64,000 nt of DNA, taken from the IMG/VR virus record IMGVR_UViG_3300005613_000001, positions 124,001 through 188,000 of that record; one strand, 5' to 3'. Both the position numbers and the translations under genes were made by a program. The notes beneath the pieces are model-generated. The model worked only from the letters and a program-made list of their open reading frames with translations, had not been told where the DNA came from and did not search any database. Positions 4,661 through 43,651 of this stretch are shown here, one piece after another (within the stretch, counting starts at the first letter, position 1; each line of letters begins with the position of its first letter).

Positions 4661-5102
4661 AGCTATCCTCCGTATCTATCTTTTCAAAAGCTTCACGAAT
4701 GGACTTAGCCTCTTCCAAGGCACAGAATATGGCCTGTTGCCGGGTTTCAAGCGTAACTGCCCGTTCTTGCCATCTTGTAGCTATTCTGTTTAATTCGCGT
4801 TCCCTTTCCTGGTAAAAGCGTATTTTGCCTTCCATATAGGCCCGCACCTTCAAATGCTCTACTTCAAGTGCCTTTACATCCTTGGCAGCTTGTATTGATC
4901 GCCTGTGTGCCGTTCTAAATTGATTGCTATTGTTATTAATAAACCTTTCGTAATCGTACTTCATCGGCCTCCATACCAAAGTTAAAAATGCAATCACAAG
5001 TCCAGCAAAAATGAAGGGAGAACAAACAAGCCAAACCGTGCGAATCCGCATGGAATACCACTTCATTCCTAGCGTCCTTCCTGTGGGCTGCATCCCACAC
5101 AC
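4638..5102 (-). CDS. Membrane-anchored coiled-coil protein
   Basis: Hydrophobic segment then heptad-rich region. Confidence 0.55.
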   Translation of the reverse strand: MCGMQPTGRTLGMKWYSMRIRTVWLVCSPFIFAGLVIAFLTLVWRPMKYDYERFINNNSNQFRTAHRRSIQAAKDVKALEVEHLKVRAYMEGKIRFYQERERELNRIATRWQERAVTLETRQQAIFCALEEAKSIREAFEKIDTEDSYVEQDGN

Positions 5103-8895: not shown

Positions 8896-9279
8896 TTACG
8901 GTCCATTTGGTGGTTCAAAAACTAAACCCGTATAAATAAATCCGCCTACAAAACCCAAAGTCCAAATAACGCATCCGACAACCTTAAGAGAACACATAAA
9001 AAAAGGTGATGCTGCTATTAACGATGTTAAAATTGCCCCCAATACCATCGCCATGCACAACACCAAAGAATCCGGTCGCATTGGTGCTACTTTGTTGCTA
9101 ACTGTAAGGATGAAACCTATTATGCAGGCTGTGATAAAATAAACCGCCGACCAAATTGAACAGCCTGCCATGTGGTAAGAACAAATAAAAAAGGGCAAAC
9201 TAGACATGACAGCAGCGGCTAGACCGCCCATACAACTTAAAAGCCATATCCTTGCCGGTGGGCGTGATTCAGTTCTCAC
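8896..9279 (-). CDS. Membrane protein with internal duplication (4 TM)
   Basis: Two repeats ending S.PFF.CS...GC.IW. Confidence 0.6.
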   Translation of the reverse strand: MRTESRPPARIWLLSCMGGLAAAVMSSLPFFICSYHMAGCSIWSAVYFITACIIGFILTVSNKVAPMRPDSLVLCMAMVLGAILTSLIAASPFFMCSLKVVGCVIWTLGFVGGFIYTGLVFEPPNGP

Positions 9280-10202
9280 TTTTTAACTCCTAAATGAATC
9301 TTAATCCAACCATCATCATCAATTTCAACGGCATCAAAAACCTTCTTTACCTTATCAACATCAATCGCCTTAACTATCTCTTCAATCTTCTGAACCGTTT
9401 CCTTGTCAAATAAACGAAATATGTCCAGAAGACCTTGTACTTGGGCTTTCTGCTGCGCTACGAGATGCTTGTCAAGTTCCTCCGGTACAAGTGTTATCAA
9501 TTTTTCCTTAACCGCCTCATATGTCAATCCAACATCTTTTAAAATTATCTGATGATGGGAAGTTGTCTTTTGACCAGTTGTGGCATCCCGTTGCGGCCTT
9601 AAAAGACCTAAAAGAAGATGCTCGGTGCCCACATAGAGTATCCCACTATCATCAGTAGTTGCTTCCTCCATAGCATAATCCATTAGCGTTTTAGCTGCCG
9701 GAGATAACGGAATCTTCCCAATAGGGCTAGCCTCCGAGCCCTTCACCATCAATTTCTCTAATCTGCATTCAATGTCTGCCGGGGATACCTTCATGGATTC
9801 CAAAAGCTTAACAGCAACCCCACCACGCTCTCTTACTATTCCAAAAATAATGTGCTCTAAATCAACTTGCATGTGATTATAACTACGTGCAACTTGATTG
9901 GCTATTGACATCACCTTGCGGGCACGATCAGAAAATCGTTCGTACATACTTGTCTCCCTAAGTTTATTCACACCAGCACCGATTTCTTTTCGGTGCGATG
10001 GCAGTCCATTCGTAACCGGAAGCACTACACTAAAGGCTCTGTTGCAACGGGAATTGCTACCTTCTACTTTCTCCGTAGCCTCTTTTTCTACATCGCCAGT
10101 TCCACACAAAAAAACATTATTCCCTATGTGGGTAACTACGTCACTTCCACACAAAGGGCAGAATTTTATCCGATGCTTCTTATAATGCTTCCTCATCTTC
10201 AT
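9276..10202 (-). CDS. Zn-ribbon + stand-alone ClpC-type N-terminal (Clp repeat) domain, no ATPase
   Basis: MYERFSDRARKVM...EHIIFG...YVGTEHLLLGLL. Confidence 0.8.
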   Translation of the reverse strand: MKMRKHYKKHRIKFCPLCGSDVVTHIGNNVFLCGTGDVEKEATEKVEGSNSRCNRAFSVVLPVTNGLPSHRKEIGAGVNKLRETSMYERFSDRARKVMSIANQVARSYNHMQVDLEHIIFGIVRERGGVAVKLLESMKVSPADIECRLEKLMVKGSEASPIGKIPLSPAAKTLMDYAMEEATTDDSGILYVGTEHLLLGLLRPQRDATTGQKTTSHHQIILKDVGLTYEAVKEKLITLVPEELDKHLVAQQKAQVQGLLDIFRLFDKETVQKIEEIVKAIDVDKVKKVFDAVEIDDDGWIKIHLGVKK

Positions 10203-10632: not shown

Positions 10633-10730
10633 TAGGACTGGAAGGAATCGAACCTTCTCCTAGAGTTAATCTGACTCTACCTTTCGGCCAAGGTTATAAG
10701 CCTTGTGTGCTTCCATTACACCACAGTCCC
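10633..10730 (-). tRNA. tRNA-Ile(TAT) with long two-hairpin variable region
   Basis: CAAGG-CT TAT AA-CCTTG; V region GCCGAAAGGT + AGAGT..ACTCT; 98 nt. Confidence 0.75.
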
Positions 10731-11096: not shown

Positions 11097-11327
11097 TCAC
11101 TCTTCAGAACACCCACACCCTTCCATAAATTCATCCCATTCAAAAGGATGAAATTGTTTATTTAGTGCATTAGCAATTCTATTACACACTCTACTCCACT
11201 GGGAATCTGTCAAATCTTGGAGTGTGATTTCTTTTCTGGCTAATGCCAATTCCTCGGCAAACTCATCCAAATTAATTGGTGTCAGATTTAAGCATTCCGC
11301 TAAATCTTCTAAATACAAATTTTCCAT
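11097..11327 (-). CDS. Acidic hypothetical protein
   Basis: ORF track. Confidence 0.55.
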   Translation of the reverse strand: MENLYLEDLAECLNLTPINLDEFAEELALARKEITLQDLTDSQWSRVCNRIANALNKQFHPFEWDEFMEGCGCSEE

Positions 11328-11454
11328 TTATTTCTTCTTTTCTACCCACTTAACTCCAGGGTCTATTCCCTGCCGTTCCAATTCGCGGGCAATTCTCACA
11401 TCCCTCACTGCCAACTTCTTTTCTTTTTTACATCTAACCAAAAATTTTTCATAG

Positions 11455-11528
11455 TGGGCCGAACAGGAATTGAACCTGTGACTTCTTCCATGTCACGGAA
11501 GCGCTCTAGCCAACTGAGCTACCGGCCC
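11455..11528 (-). tRNA. tRNA-Val(GAC)
   Basis: CTTCC-GT GAC AT-GGAAG. Confidence 0.92.
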
Positions 11529-11562
11529 GTAACGACACGACAAATTTTTTTCGCCTCTTATA

Positions 11563-11689
11563 AATTGCTCGACCAGTGCGCTGTTACACCAAAGGGCTTA
11601 AGAGGACAGGGTTGCCTCTGCACTTCCGTATATCCCATTCTTTAAATGATGGCTACCTCTAAGCCAACATCCTGGTTGTCTATGCAATT
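11563..11689 (-). ncRNA. 23S rRNA H42-H44 (L10/L11-binding, GTPase-associated centre) mimic with 47-nt insertion
   Basis: AGACAACCAGGATGTTGGCTTAGAGGTAGCCATCATTTAAAGAA...GGTGTAACAGCGCACTGGTCGAG vs E. coli AGACAGCCAGGATGTTGGCTTAGAAGCAGCCATCATTTAAAGAAAGCGTAATAGCTCACTGGTCGAG; closed by AATTGC/GCAATT. Confidence 0.8.
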
Positions 11690-11735
11690 CGGGCTACTTA
11701 CCCAATGCGCATGTCTTCCTATTTGCCGTGCCGAG

Positions 11736-11807
11736 TAGGCGATATTGGTTTCGCACCAATGGCCTCCGCTGCGTGAAAGCGGCGCTCTTCTCCTGAGCTA
11801 ATCGCCT
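11736..11807 (-). tRNA. tRNA-Val(CAC), second copy, T-loop TGCGAAA
   Basis: CCGCT-TT CAC GC-AGCGG. Confidence 0.82.
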
Positions 11808-11811
11808 AAAG

Positions 11812-11882
11812 TTGTCCCGCTAGGATTTGAACCTAGACTAATTGATTCAGAGTCAATCGTGCTGCCGTTACACTACGGGACA
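11812..11882 (-). tRNA. tRNA-Gln(CTG)
   Basis: ATTGA-CT CTG AA-TCAAT; U1-A72. Confidence 0.92.
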
Positions 11883-12372
11883 ATTCCGCATGTTTTTCTC
11901 TATGACACCTACAACAAAGCAAGTCACACTTGTCTAATTCTGACCTGGCCCGCTTTAAATTCCAATTTTTAATTGATTTAAAGTTAGGATCTTTTTCTTT
12001 TGAATCTCTATGATGAAATTCTAGTGCGGCAATACATTTACTATAACCACATACCACGCACTTTCCACCTTTATACCCCACCATTTCTTGCTTATTTTTC
12101 CTTGCTCTCTCAATCAATCGTTGATTGGTGCAAGATTTACAACGCGATTGGAATTCTCCTGTATCTGACCGTCTATAGAATTCCGATTCATTCTCTTCAC
12201 CACATGAACACTTTGCAACAAAACGTCTTTTATTATATGGTAAATTATTTGTTGCTAACCCATACTTTCGCAGCCAATACCTTACTTTACATTGAGAAAC
12301 ATTAAAATAATTTGCAATTTCTCTTTGTGACAAACCCTTGTCAATCAGTTGTTTCATTTTTATTTTATCCAT
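11833..12372 (-). CDS. HTH + HNH homing endonuclease
   Basis: CVVCGYSKC..ALEFHH...KCDLLCCRCHREKH; reads 50 nt into tRNA-Gln. Confidence 0.82.
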   Translation of the reverse strand: MDKIKMKQLIDKGLSQREIANYFNVSQCKVRYWLRKYGLATNNLPYNKRRFVAKCSCGEENESEFYRRSDTGEFQSRCKSCTNQRLIERARKNKQEMVGYKGGKCVVCGYSKCIAALEFHHRDSKEKDPNFKSIKNWNLKRARSELDKCDLLCCRCHREKHAELSRSVTAARLTLNQLV

Positions 12373-14277: not shown

Positions 14278-14592
14278 TTATCCAAGGGTTTCCTCCGATT
14301 TCTGTCTTGCTAGCTCTTCGGAAGACCCAATCAACTTGTAAAGCTCTCGGGGCAAAGGGGTTCCTGTCATTTCTACCGAGTAGTGACACAAATCTTTACA
14401 GAGGGTTATCCCATTTTCCTTAACATACCCCCCAAAAGGCATCTCTTCCCTCTCTGTAACGTGGTGAGCATCCATTTTCTCTTCTACGTCTTCCGGGGTA
14501 GCTTGCTCTCCACATAGCTGACAGCGGTATTTGTCTCTTTCGAATACCGATTTTCGGAAGGCGGCTCGGATTTCCTGCTTTTTCTTCTTCAT
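14278..14592 (-). CDS. HNH endonuclease (small)
   Basis: RDKYRCQLCG...DAHH...NGITLC...CH. Confidence 0.8.
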   Translation of the reverse strand: MKKKKQEIRAAFRKSVFERDKYRCQLCGEQATPEDVEEKMDAHHVTEREEMPFGGYVKENGITLCKDLCHYSVEMTGTPLPRELYKLIGSSEELARQKSEETLG

Positions 14593-33531: not shown

Positions 33532-34029
33532 TTTAACATATAATTTAGGGAAAGGCACATCAGGAATCGGCAGAGAGAAAAAATCGCACAGCTTATCCCA
33601 ACCATCGCCCTCAATTATATTCATTCTCAATAGCGGCTTATCTTGAAAAAAATCAGCCACCGCTGGGTAATGACTATTATATATTCTTACCCATTTCTTA
33701 AAATCAACCTTTAACCAATTCCCCTTATAGTTTTTTTTGTTTCTGTTTCGTTTTACATGACCCTCTCTGCTTCTAAGCCAACTTCGCAACTCACGCTCTG
33801 TTAAAATAAATTTAGCACCAGGAAACTTCCTGTGTAGCTCTCTAAAGTGGAAAGGAAGGTTGCCATCAAGATACGCATTAACCCTCTTTGTTCCAAAATC
33901 TAAATTTTCTAATAAAGCATTGTTTTTATGTTCATCATGTTGTGGTGTCCACCCCAATATTCTAAGTGCCGCACTCAAAGAATGCGTACCTGTTTTATTC
34001 AAGCCTATACAAAATACAAGAGGTTTCAT
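33517..34029 (-). CDS. Sulfotransferase family (Sulfotransfer_4-like)
   Basis: FCIGLNKTGTHSL...AKFILT.R...W..S...DGWDKLCDFF. Confidence 0.82.
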   Translation of the reverse strand: MKPLVFCIGLNKTGTHSLSAALRILGWTPQHDEHKNNALLENLDFGTKRVNAYLDGNLPFHFRELHRKFPGAKFILTERELRSWLRSREGHVKRNRNKKNYKGNWLKVDFKKWVRIYNSHYPAVADFFQDKPLLRMNIIEGDGWDKLCDFFSLPIPDVPFPKLYVKGGVA

Positions 34030-34871: not shown

Positions 34872-34908
34872 AACTCCTTTTCAATTCAATACACTCAGGC
34901 TATACCAA

Positions 34909-34993
34909 ATACAACGTCAGGATTCGAACCTGAACTTCTGGCTCCAATTCGCTTATGCTTTAGCCAGCGTGCTACCATTACACTACAATCGTA
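34909..34993 (-). ncRNA. tRNA-Gln-like RNA with ~13-nt insertion in anticodon loop
   Basis: Gln-type D-arm GTGT/GCAC, CTGGC/GCCAG stem, 20-nt loop ending TTGGA, intact T-arm. Confidence 0.6.
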
Positions 34994-35182
34994 CCGCTTT
35001 CAGAACGCTACTGAAATCTAACTACTCAAACTAACTACTAACTATGGACTATTGAGTATTGACCTGTCCAGGCCCTTCCCCTGGCTCACGGTTTTTATAG
35101 CCTAAGCGAATGTTATCAATACCTTTCATCCATAGGGTTCATTAACTCTTTCATCAAATTATTTCACGAACCTACTCACAAG

Positions 35183-43251: not shown

Positions 43252-43265
43252 GTTAAATCAAAAAG

Positions 43266-43350
43266 CGCTGGGGCTTGGAATCGAACCAAGCGTTTTTACC
43301 GGCTGCCCATTATAGACATGAGGTAGTGTTCTACCATTGAACTACCCAAC
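43266..43350 (-). ncRNA. tRNA-like RNA with enlarged (21-nt) anticodon-loop region
   Basis: D-arm GTTC-AATGGTA-GAAC, T-arm CTTGG-TTCGATT-CCAAG, no assignable anticodon. Confidence 0.55.
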
Positions 43351-43352
43351 AG

Positions 43353-43424
43353 TGGTCGGAGCGGGAATTGAACCACGCATCTCCCTCTTTAATGGAGGGC
43401 GTTCTAGCGTTGAACTATCCAACC
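43353..43424 (-). tRNA. Aberrant tRNA with TTA (ochre) anticodon, probably non-decoding
   Basis: CCCTC-CA TTA AA-GAGGG; A33, no D-loop GG, bulged T-stem. Confidence 0.45.
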
Positions 43425-43651
43425 ATAACCCTGTCGGGGTCGCAGGGCTTAAAACCCATTTTGACGATCCAACAGGGAACAAATAGTGAGAGTAAGAGGT
43501 TTAGTTCCTTTACTGGCGTTCAGGAATCTAACCTGCCAGGCCCTACTCTCCAATTTGGACTACACACAACGCAACTTTTGGTCACAAAGTACCGGGTCGC
43601 TTTGCGTCCCAGATCTTTGCTTAGGGGTCGCTTTGCGTCCCCCGACCAAAG

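Follow-up and report, generated by a model that had tools for sequence, protein, structure and literature searches.

A 127-nt element on the minus strand of the analysed DNA (the window, meaning the whole 64,000-nt stretch of an IMG/VR virus record) appears, judging from its sequence and its relatives, to encode a small, stable RNA that belongs to a widespread phage family homologous to the uL11-binding domain of 23S rRNA, the GTPase-associated centre (GAC). A comparison of the whole 64-kb window with 4227 Rfam families matched 11563-11689 (minus strand) to positions 1079-1158 of the bacterial LSU model, that is, to H42-H44 or the GAC (50.6 bits, E 3.8e-12; 45 bits in a local cmscan). No other LSU, SSU or 5S match was found in the window, even at E 0.05, and neither neighbouring rRNA domains (H41, H45 onward) nor their decayed remains lie around the element, the matched positions being 1079-1158 only. 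An earlier note on this DNA had described a stand-alone copy of H42-H44 without flanking rRNA, and the element is indeed the sole rRNA-like piece in 64 kb. With positions numbered after E. coli 23S rRNA (Table 1), H44 (1087-1102) is interrupted by 47 extra nucleotides between 1090 and 1091, unlike H44 in the true 23S copies from our pattern scans described below (L006, L044 and L124), which has no insertion. The same note's self-pairing insertion at the base of H44 is thus recovered as GGG, 37 nt, CCC and UUUG between U1090 and G1091, and its replaced kink-turn C-stem as a perfect 6-bp AAUUGC/GCAAUU helix, read in the sequence, which takes the place of the outer rRNA stem in the window copy. 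The single-sequence minimum-free-energy fold of the element was uninformative (z-score -1.97, H44 mispaired), and its structure therefore rests on homology and covariation.

Table 1. Parts of the GAC-like RNA element and the tRNA genes on either side of it (window coordinates; rRNA equivalents after E. coli 23S rRNA)
Feature	Position	Strand	Basis or remark
tRNA-Val(cac), upstream on the transcribed strand, 45 nt before the element	11735..11807	-	ARAGORN, Rfam
GAC-like RNA element, 127 nt, H42-H44 homologue with 47-nt insertion	11563..11689	-	Rfam LSU; covariance model R1
Outer (C) stem of Kt-42-like kink-turn, AAUUGC/GCAAUU	5' strand 11684..11689, partner 11563-11568	-	Sequence reading
Kt-42-like internal loop AUAGACA (3-nt bulge and G.A pairs), partner CGA	11677..11683, 11569-11571	-	Rfam LSU consensus
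H42 distal stem ACCAG (1051-1055 equivalents), partner CUGGU	11672..11676, 11572-11576	-	Rfam LSU register
H43 hairpin (1057-1081 equivalents)	11646..11670	-	Rfam LSU register
H43 loop UUAGAGGUA	11654-11662	-	A1067 equivalent = 11660, U1072 = 11655
Junction UUAAAGAAU (1082-1090 equivalents; UUAAAGA junction), including A1088, tertiary partner of U1060	11637..11645	-	
47-nt insertion: GGG/CCC basal stem (Pi), 37-nt interior, UUUG linker	11590..11636	-	Exactly between U1090 and G1091
H44 hairpin (1091-1102 equivalents) GU-GUAACA-GC, then G, then C	11578..11589	-	A1095 equivalent = 11585
tRNA-Val(gac), downstream, 34 nt after the element	11454..11528	-	ARAGORN, Rfam

Three pattern scans of IMG/VR recovered at least 200 distinct complete elements of this family in viral contigs (a lower bound), and one scan of species-representative genome and MAG contigs yielded 37 further elements, on contigs labelled as Clostridia, Bacteroidota, Actinomycetota, Chloroflexota, Planctomycetota, Nitrospirota, Proteobacteria and others. 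One of the elements recovered from IMG/VR, L093, is identical to the window copy, and the 527-kb contig that carries it is probably where the window comes from. Matches to the 3' motif that had no recognisable 5' half or lay at a contig edge were treated as chance or truncated and left out; they made up approximately one-quarter of the matches in viral contigs and two-thirds of the matches in genome contigs. Only three true 23S genes were present among the pattern-scan matches listed. Members are stand-alone genes of 100-450 nt with a common architecture: the first strand of a closing stem, whose sequence is arbitrary, is followed by H43, UUUAAAGAGU, the insertion, (Y)UUUGG, the hairpin of H44 and ACAC, and the second strand of the stem completes the element. 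Tandem GAC-like copies were observed at L355 3992-5389 and L005 1154-1482: a contig binned as Candidatus Limenecus has two or three, and Pseudomonas phage Milchi carries a degenerate second copy upstream of the intact one.

Compared with GenBank phages by BLAST, the element matched rRNA contaminants along with intergenic DNA of unrelated cultured phages (Xanthomonas phages XaC1, XacN1 and XbC2, Serratia phage BF, several Erwinia jumbo phages, Aeromonas phage 4_4572 and Pseudomonas phage Milchi), to which a second query added Pseudomonas phages pf16, Astolliot and UNO-G1W1, Cronobacter phage GAP32 and Pectobacterium phage CBB. The carriers of Xanthomonas, Serratia, Aeromonas and Pseudomonas were verified directly, and the Erwinia phages by BLAST only. 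The top BLAST match, Paenibacillus phage Pd_22F, was rejected as a member, as the match is a complete 23S gene. The deposited "complete phage genome" of Pd_22F (L006, MZ092003.1) contains a near full-length, unannotated 23S rRNA gene at ~82.5-85.5 kb (2619 bits), which is host DNA or an assembly artefact. No RNA annotation exists at the carrier sites in the cultured phages checked (XacN1, BF, pf16 and others), and the family fills an unannotated intergenic gap in BF, pf16, Milchi, XacN1, 4_4572, GAP32 and CBB; it merits an Rfam entry. We found no such family in Rfam 15 or in the open-access literature, an absence that is no proof.

To describe the family, a covariance model (R1) was built from 61 short-insertion members, with the window copy in the training alignment. 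R1 scored the window copy at 85.7 bits (E ~1e-21) and true 23S rRNA at 52-59 bits, while 98 members outside the training set reached 40-114 bits, most of them well above true 23S, and IMG/VR contigs taken as counterparts of pf16, GAP32 and CBB reached 77-102 bits. The window copy shares the R1 architecture, including the UUUG linker and the GGG/CCC basal stem. Paired cells made up 92.5% of the R1-derived alignment, compared with 68.3% in shuffles, and 18 of its 23 pairs showed double changes. The covariation score was 0.611 versus 0.163 in shuffles, none of 500 shuffles reached it, and slid-register controls did not exceed 0.19. Pair counts, read in a fixed register over the 200 sequences listed, illustrate this at single positions. 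For example, the closing stem (P1) pairs over at least eight positions and uses all four Watson-Crick types at nearly every position past the two innermost pairs, pair 1058-1080 is GC in 73, UA in 65, AU in 46 and CG in 6 of the 200 listed, and pair 1082-1086 is UA in 130, AU in 30 and CG in 28, while U1060-A1088 is kept in 197.

Tertiary contacts vary in the same concerted manner. The ribosomal base triple that joins the H43 loop to H44 consists of a C1072/C1092 pair and a C1072-G1099 hydrogen bond (PMC2952862). In the family, in a sample selected on the 3' half only, the triple 1072/(1092-1099) is C/C-G in 101 members, U/U-A in 55 and mixed in two; it switches as a unit, which suggests that the RNA folds like the GAC. 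The window copy has U1072 with a U1092-G1099 wobble, the lone mixed U/U-G among the 200 listed, which is compatible with the fold and corresponds to neither canonical state. Unbiased per-position frequencies place U1060, U1066, G1071, A1077, A1085, A1088, G1093, U1094 and A1098 at 97-100% conservation. G1059-C1079, U1060-A1088, A1077 and the 1072 triple, all of them present in the window copy (the triple in its mixed form), are either 95-100% conserved or covary isosterically. The UUUG linker and A1101 hardly vary and are peculiar to the family; GU at 1089-1090 is conserved to the same degree, yet is common to many true 23S rRNAs (e.g., L006). Taken together, the helix covariation, the triple switch and the invariant tertiary-core nucleotides argue that the GAC fold itself is under selection. 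By the same unbiased frequencies, position 1067 is A in 66% of members and G in ~29%, and 1096-1097 are variable. An invariant fold core combined with such relaxed positions would be expected if selection acts on the fold and on a surface for protein binding, and not on the chemistry of translation factors. With G at 1067 in ~29% of members, a role that depends on genuine contacts of A1067, whether of the thiostrepton type or with factors, is also disfavoured.

These results bear directly on whether the element is host rRNA gene debris or assembly contamination. High identity to 23S rRNA would be expected of such debris; nonetheless, this explanation is refuted, as flanking rRNA is absent, the family-specific insertion and junction are present, the family model scores the element well above real 23S rRNA, and hundreds of homologues carry compensatory changes. 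The earlier note had argued for a selected mimic as opposed to captured debris, and this argument is upheld by the secondary and tertiary covariation among those homologues, with the amendment that the element is in fact a homologue; covarying relatives exist, and no longer decayed rRNA copy was found. Compared with 23S H42-H44 (E. coli 1030-1124), the element has a homologous sequence and the same secondary structure, and the family shares the tertiary signatures U1060-A1088, the 1072/(1092-1099) triple, G1071 and the 1082-1086 pair with the ribosomal GAC (as well as, in the window copy, the Kt-42 loop). Unlike the ribosomal GAC, the family is stand-alone, is encoded in phage genomes outside the ribosome, and has an arbitrary, covarying closing stem, the insertion at 1090/1091 with UUUG, an A at 1101, and relaxed A1067 and 1096-1097. 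The hundreds of natural GAC variants, with their isosteric triple swap and tolerated insertions, are also a resource for a long-studied problem of RNA folding and recognition.

Every member listed carries an insertion at 1090/1091 (24-367 nt, median 138), in which the four basal pairs covary and UUUG is 89-99% conserved. The insertions are otherwise very diverse, with 105 singletons among the 200 listed and the shortest being 24-27 nt long. The largest subtype (42 of the 200 listed; e.g., L252, L283, L097, L005 and L012) combines a 3'-end CACCCC, a GNRA-like hairpin (GUAACUGG or GGAAACGG) and UAAGG, and another group has a hairpin loop GGUAAYAG that resembles the H44 loop; insertions may dock back on the core. 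A first table had placed tRNAs inside insertions (distance 0), which was rejected, given that ARAGORN finds none in the excised elements and that the tRNAs abut upstream. It is conceivable that the insertion is the working part, for instance an aptamer or a site at which a factor of the phage or the host docks, and that the GAC serves as a stable, protein-stabilised fold to hold it. The constant presence of the insertion, the conserved basal stem and GU/UUUG junction, and the 3' motif common to the largest subtype are in keeping with such a scaffold. However, it is the GAC core that stays constant, while the insertions are extremely diverse and can be as short as 24-27 nt; an exact rRNA tertiary core would also be superfluous in a scaffold, and we regard this explanation as improbable. 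The insertion would more readily be a lineage-specific decoration, perhaps stabilising the fold or adding a second partner.

The family is strongly associated with tRNA genes. The fetched loci of 142 of the 200 listed elements include a tRNA, 1196 of these tRNAs being on the same strand as the element versus 7 on the opposite strand. A co-oriented tRNA lies within 100 nt of 83 of the 200 listed elements, with many abutting within a few nucleotides, and most of the 37 genome-contig elements are again inside co-oriented tRNA arrays. The link to tRNA load is nonetheless not absolute, as ~30% of elements have no tRNA in the locus. ARAGORN identified 41 tRNA genes in the window, all on the minus strand, and the element is located between tRNA-Val(CAC) and tRNA-Val(GAC), as first noticed in the sequence, both co-oriented with it and 45 and 34 nt away. 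A consensus scan detected no promoter-like site directly upstream of the window copy and no terminator-like site on the minus strand between the two tRNA-Val genes. The element is probably released by tRNA processing, another suggestion of the earlier note. The arrangement would also suit a passive part, in which a captured rRNA fragment serves as a stable spacer or as processing punctuation in tRNA precursors, with no role in trans: the element abuts tRNAs, and the window copy has no promoter-like or terminator-like site of its own at these places. Such a spacer would need neither invariant tertiary-core bases nor a covarying triple, though, and the family persists across very distant phages and, in the ~30% of members noted above, where no tRNA is found in the locus. 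This makes a purely passive element very improbable.

The neighbours of the element comprise tRNAs, a helix-turn-helix (HTH) domain protein with HNH-like sequence, and small ORFs without a Pfam match. The HTH protein is encoded by a 179-aa ORF at 11833-12372 (minus strand), in which the HTH domain is N-terminal and the Cys/His-rich C-terminal half was read as HNH-like, with no HNH match in Pfam; the 3' end of the ORF overlaps tRNA-Gln(ctg) by ~50 nt, and it may represent a gene of the homing-endonuclease type lodged among the tRNA genes. An ORF at 14278-14592 has a clearer HNH domain, and 9276-10202 (minus strand), beside the array, encodes a 308-aa Clp_N-domain protein (E 5e-15). Because the larger ORFs of the window are accessory genes (epimerase, methyltransferase, radical SAM, glycosyltransferase and amidoligase), its assignment to a virus depends on IMG/VR and on the context of a tRNA array and endonuclease-like genes.

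No protein is conserved next to the family. Clustering of ORFs within 4 kb around the 200 elements gave no conserved neighbour, with at most 14 loci per cluster, and tblastn against the phage collection identified no uL11 gene in carrier phages. A phage-encoded uL11 was rejected as a candidate, the tblastn matches being essentially mislabelled bacterial contigs. With neither a conserved neighbouring protein nor a uL11 gene in the carriers, the partner is probably a universal host component. Host uL11 is the best candidate in view of the spread over many phyla, the lack of a conserved phage partner and a fold core that is more constrained than A1067, and our best explanation, which we put forward tentatively, is that the RNA acts as a decoy for host uL11. 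The element would be transcribed as part of the array and excised by the enzymes that process the neighbouring tRNAs, namely RNase P and those that act on tRNA 3' ends, and the freed RNA would fold into the compact GAC tertiary structure and bind free or exchangeable host uL11 as a stoichiometric decoy. The isolated 58-nt GAC RNA reportedly binds L11 tightly alone, according to work from the Draper laboratory (structures 1HC8 and 1MMS), and a relaxed phenotype is known for cells that lack L11 (relC). We infer that the most likely pay-off would be uL11-poor ribosomes that still translate and are unable to activate RelA, so that the stringent response would be blunted in a cell flooded with phage tRNAs. 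The tandem copies described above fit a dosage-dependent sponge. Ribosome-bound uL11 is abundant, however, and a sponge would hence need tRNA-like expression levels together with uL11 exchange. The insertion also emerges from H44 beside A1088-A1090, where it might hinder uL11 sterically.

The H44 loop is conserved beyond any obvious need for uL11 binding (A1095 in 93% of members; G1093, U1094 and A1098 in ~100%), a hint that there may be a second partner (a factor, the tRNA elbow or a toxin, for example). Some phage tRNAs replace tRNAs destroyed by host nucleases, and a parallel role would be that of bait, whereby toxins or defence enzymes that act on the GAC, by modification or cleavage, would meet a substitute H43/H44 in the element, sparing the ribosomes that the phage needs. 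This is unlikely in our view, even though the H44 loop is well conserved and the tRNA arrays in which the element sits are widely regarded as counter-defence cargo. In support of bait, the T6SS effector Tre23 ADP-ribosylates H44 at positions 1095-1098 of the GAC (PMC8661411). Enzymes turn over, though, and would be poorly titrated by a decoy unless bound as by an inhibitor. Moreover, each toxin family has a patchy distribution, in contrast to the RNA family with its carriers among phages of many bacterial phyla, and we know of no anti-phage system that targets the GAC.

Capture of a translation component is somewhat less likely again. The GAC with uL11 contacts the elbow of the incoming tRNA, EF-G and other GTPases, and the folded RNA, probably with uL11, could mimic this entry site for factors and tRNA, capturing and directly modulating a tRNA elbow, a RelA-type factor or a translational GTPase. 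Both ligand-facing hairpin loops are largely kept, and the element is counted as co-expressed with tRNAs on the basis of the same-strand arrays. On the other hand, the key contact base A1067 is replaced by G in the share of members given above, and the sarcin-ricin loop and the L12 stalk, which factors also require for binding, are both absent. At the E-values used, scans for further mimics of rRNA domains (e.g., the sarcin-ricin loop) found none in the window, inside the long insertions or in six scanned loci with unusually long or short insertions, and the absence of a second rRNA-like module at these places speaks against an entry-site mimic.

Of the roles that the earlier note had put forward (derepression of ribosomal protein synthesis, titration of L10/L11 or of RelA signalling, and bait for rRNA-targeting defences), derepression would, in the case of rplJL, act through L10. 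L10(L12)n recognises a kink-turn in rRNA and in the rplJ leader (PMC10931766). At the sequence level, the window copy has the Kt-42 pattern, with AAUUGC-AUA-GA in the 5' strand and GA-GCAAUU in the 3' strand, and its loop equals the rRNA consensus uuAGACA/CGA, so that the window variant may also bind L10(L12)n via Kt-42. A dedicated scan found only four distinct Kt-like sequences with 5' AGACANCCAGG, three of which have the 3' CGA and one of which, the window copy, has a clean outer stem; these relatives were too few for comparative support of the kink-turn. In most of the family, a plain stem closes H43/H44 and Kt-42 is absent. Since most members have no Kt-42/H42 part, L10 titration, and with it derepression of rplJL, is unlikely as the general role of the family.

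A close known parallel is the L10 (rplJ) leader, likewise an extra-ribosomal RNA that reproduces an rRNA protein-binding site. This leader mimics the same stalk-base region, and its kink-turn binds L10(L12)4 (PMC10931766). Ribosomal protein leaders are, however, cellular and cis-regulatory, located in the 5' UTR of the operon they regulate, and resemble rRNA in a small motif only, whereas the phage family is viral, free-standing, homologous to rRNA and centred on the uL11 site (H43/H44), mostly without a kink-turn. Accordingly, positions 11400-11900 gave no match to ribosomal protein leaders in Rfam, including L10_leader (RF00557), at E up to 10. The titration proposed here follows the same logic as the decoy RNAs CsrB/C (for CsrA) and 6S RNA (for RNA polymerase) and phage pseudo-ToxI, which have other targets and folds, none copying a ribosomal domain. 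Hence, RNAs that imitate an rRNA protein-binding site (ribosomal protein leaders) and RNA decoys in general are already known, and what appears to be new is a free-standing, virus-encoded, sequence-homologous copy of an rRNA domain that is widespread, has a conserved insertion site and resides in tRNA arrays.

On balance, we lean towards the broader view that the family represents a new class of host-takeover RNA, in which a dedicated gene, found in phages of many bacterial phyla, encodes a self-folding GAC replica whose target in trans is the translation or stress machinery of the host. The replica might strip uL11 from ribosomes to silence RelA, or trap factors or toxins that dock on the GAC. 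If true, this would be the first virus-encoded decoy of an rRNA domain, ancient, widespread and unannotated even in cultured jumbo phages. Should the RNA be expressed and bind uL11 or another GAC ligand, viruses would copy parts of ribosomal RNA, beyond tRNAs and ribosomal proteins, and large phage tRNA arrays would have a testable link to control of the stringent response or of ribosome-targeting toxins.

The family also resembles drum, GOLLD, ROOL and T4 rnaC/rnaD in genomic setting, all being non-coding, located in or near phage tRNA genes, co-oriented with them and probably freed by tRNA processing. These RNAs have no relationship to the family in sequence or structure and none resembles rRNA, and Rfam models of drum/GOLLD/ROOL-type RNAs gave no match on the elements. 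The T4 stable RNAs C and D were rejected as relatives, as the motif is absent and R1 scores 11.5 bits (E 0.34) on the T4 tRNA region. The array of one 402-kb viral contig with a short-insertion member (L078) contains a drum RNA at 4796-4906 (minus strand; RF02958, 78 bits) and weak YrlA/Y-RNA-like matches at 11273-11439. Several kinds of structured RNA seem to gather in phage tRNA arrays.

Further observations concern the tRNA genes of the window itself. In the second tRNA array, 33767-33785 (minus strand) shows a 19-nt identity, GAAGTTGGCTTAGAAGCAG, to the 5' half of the family (nhmmer E 7e-4). A second copy of the element was rejected here, with the identity (33785-33767) lying inside an apparent protein-coding ORF and the rest of the module absent; the identity may be coincidental or may be what is left of a second copy. 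A 98-nt tRNA at 10633-10730 (minus strand) was called by Rfam (57.6 bits) and missed by ARAGORN, and an 87-nt tRNA at 34908-34994 (minus strand) received an odd four-base anticodon call (aaag); both may be intron-containing or otherwise unusual. ARAGORN also identified two adjacent suppressor-type tRNAs at 43265-43350 and 43352-43425 (minus strand), with anticodons CUA and UUA, a pair suggesting that this giant phage has reassigned TAG and/or TAA.
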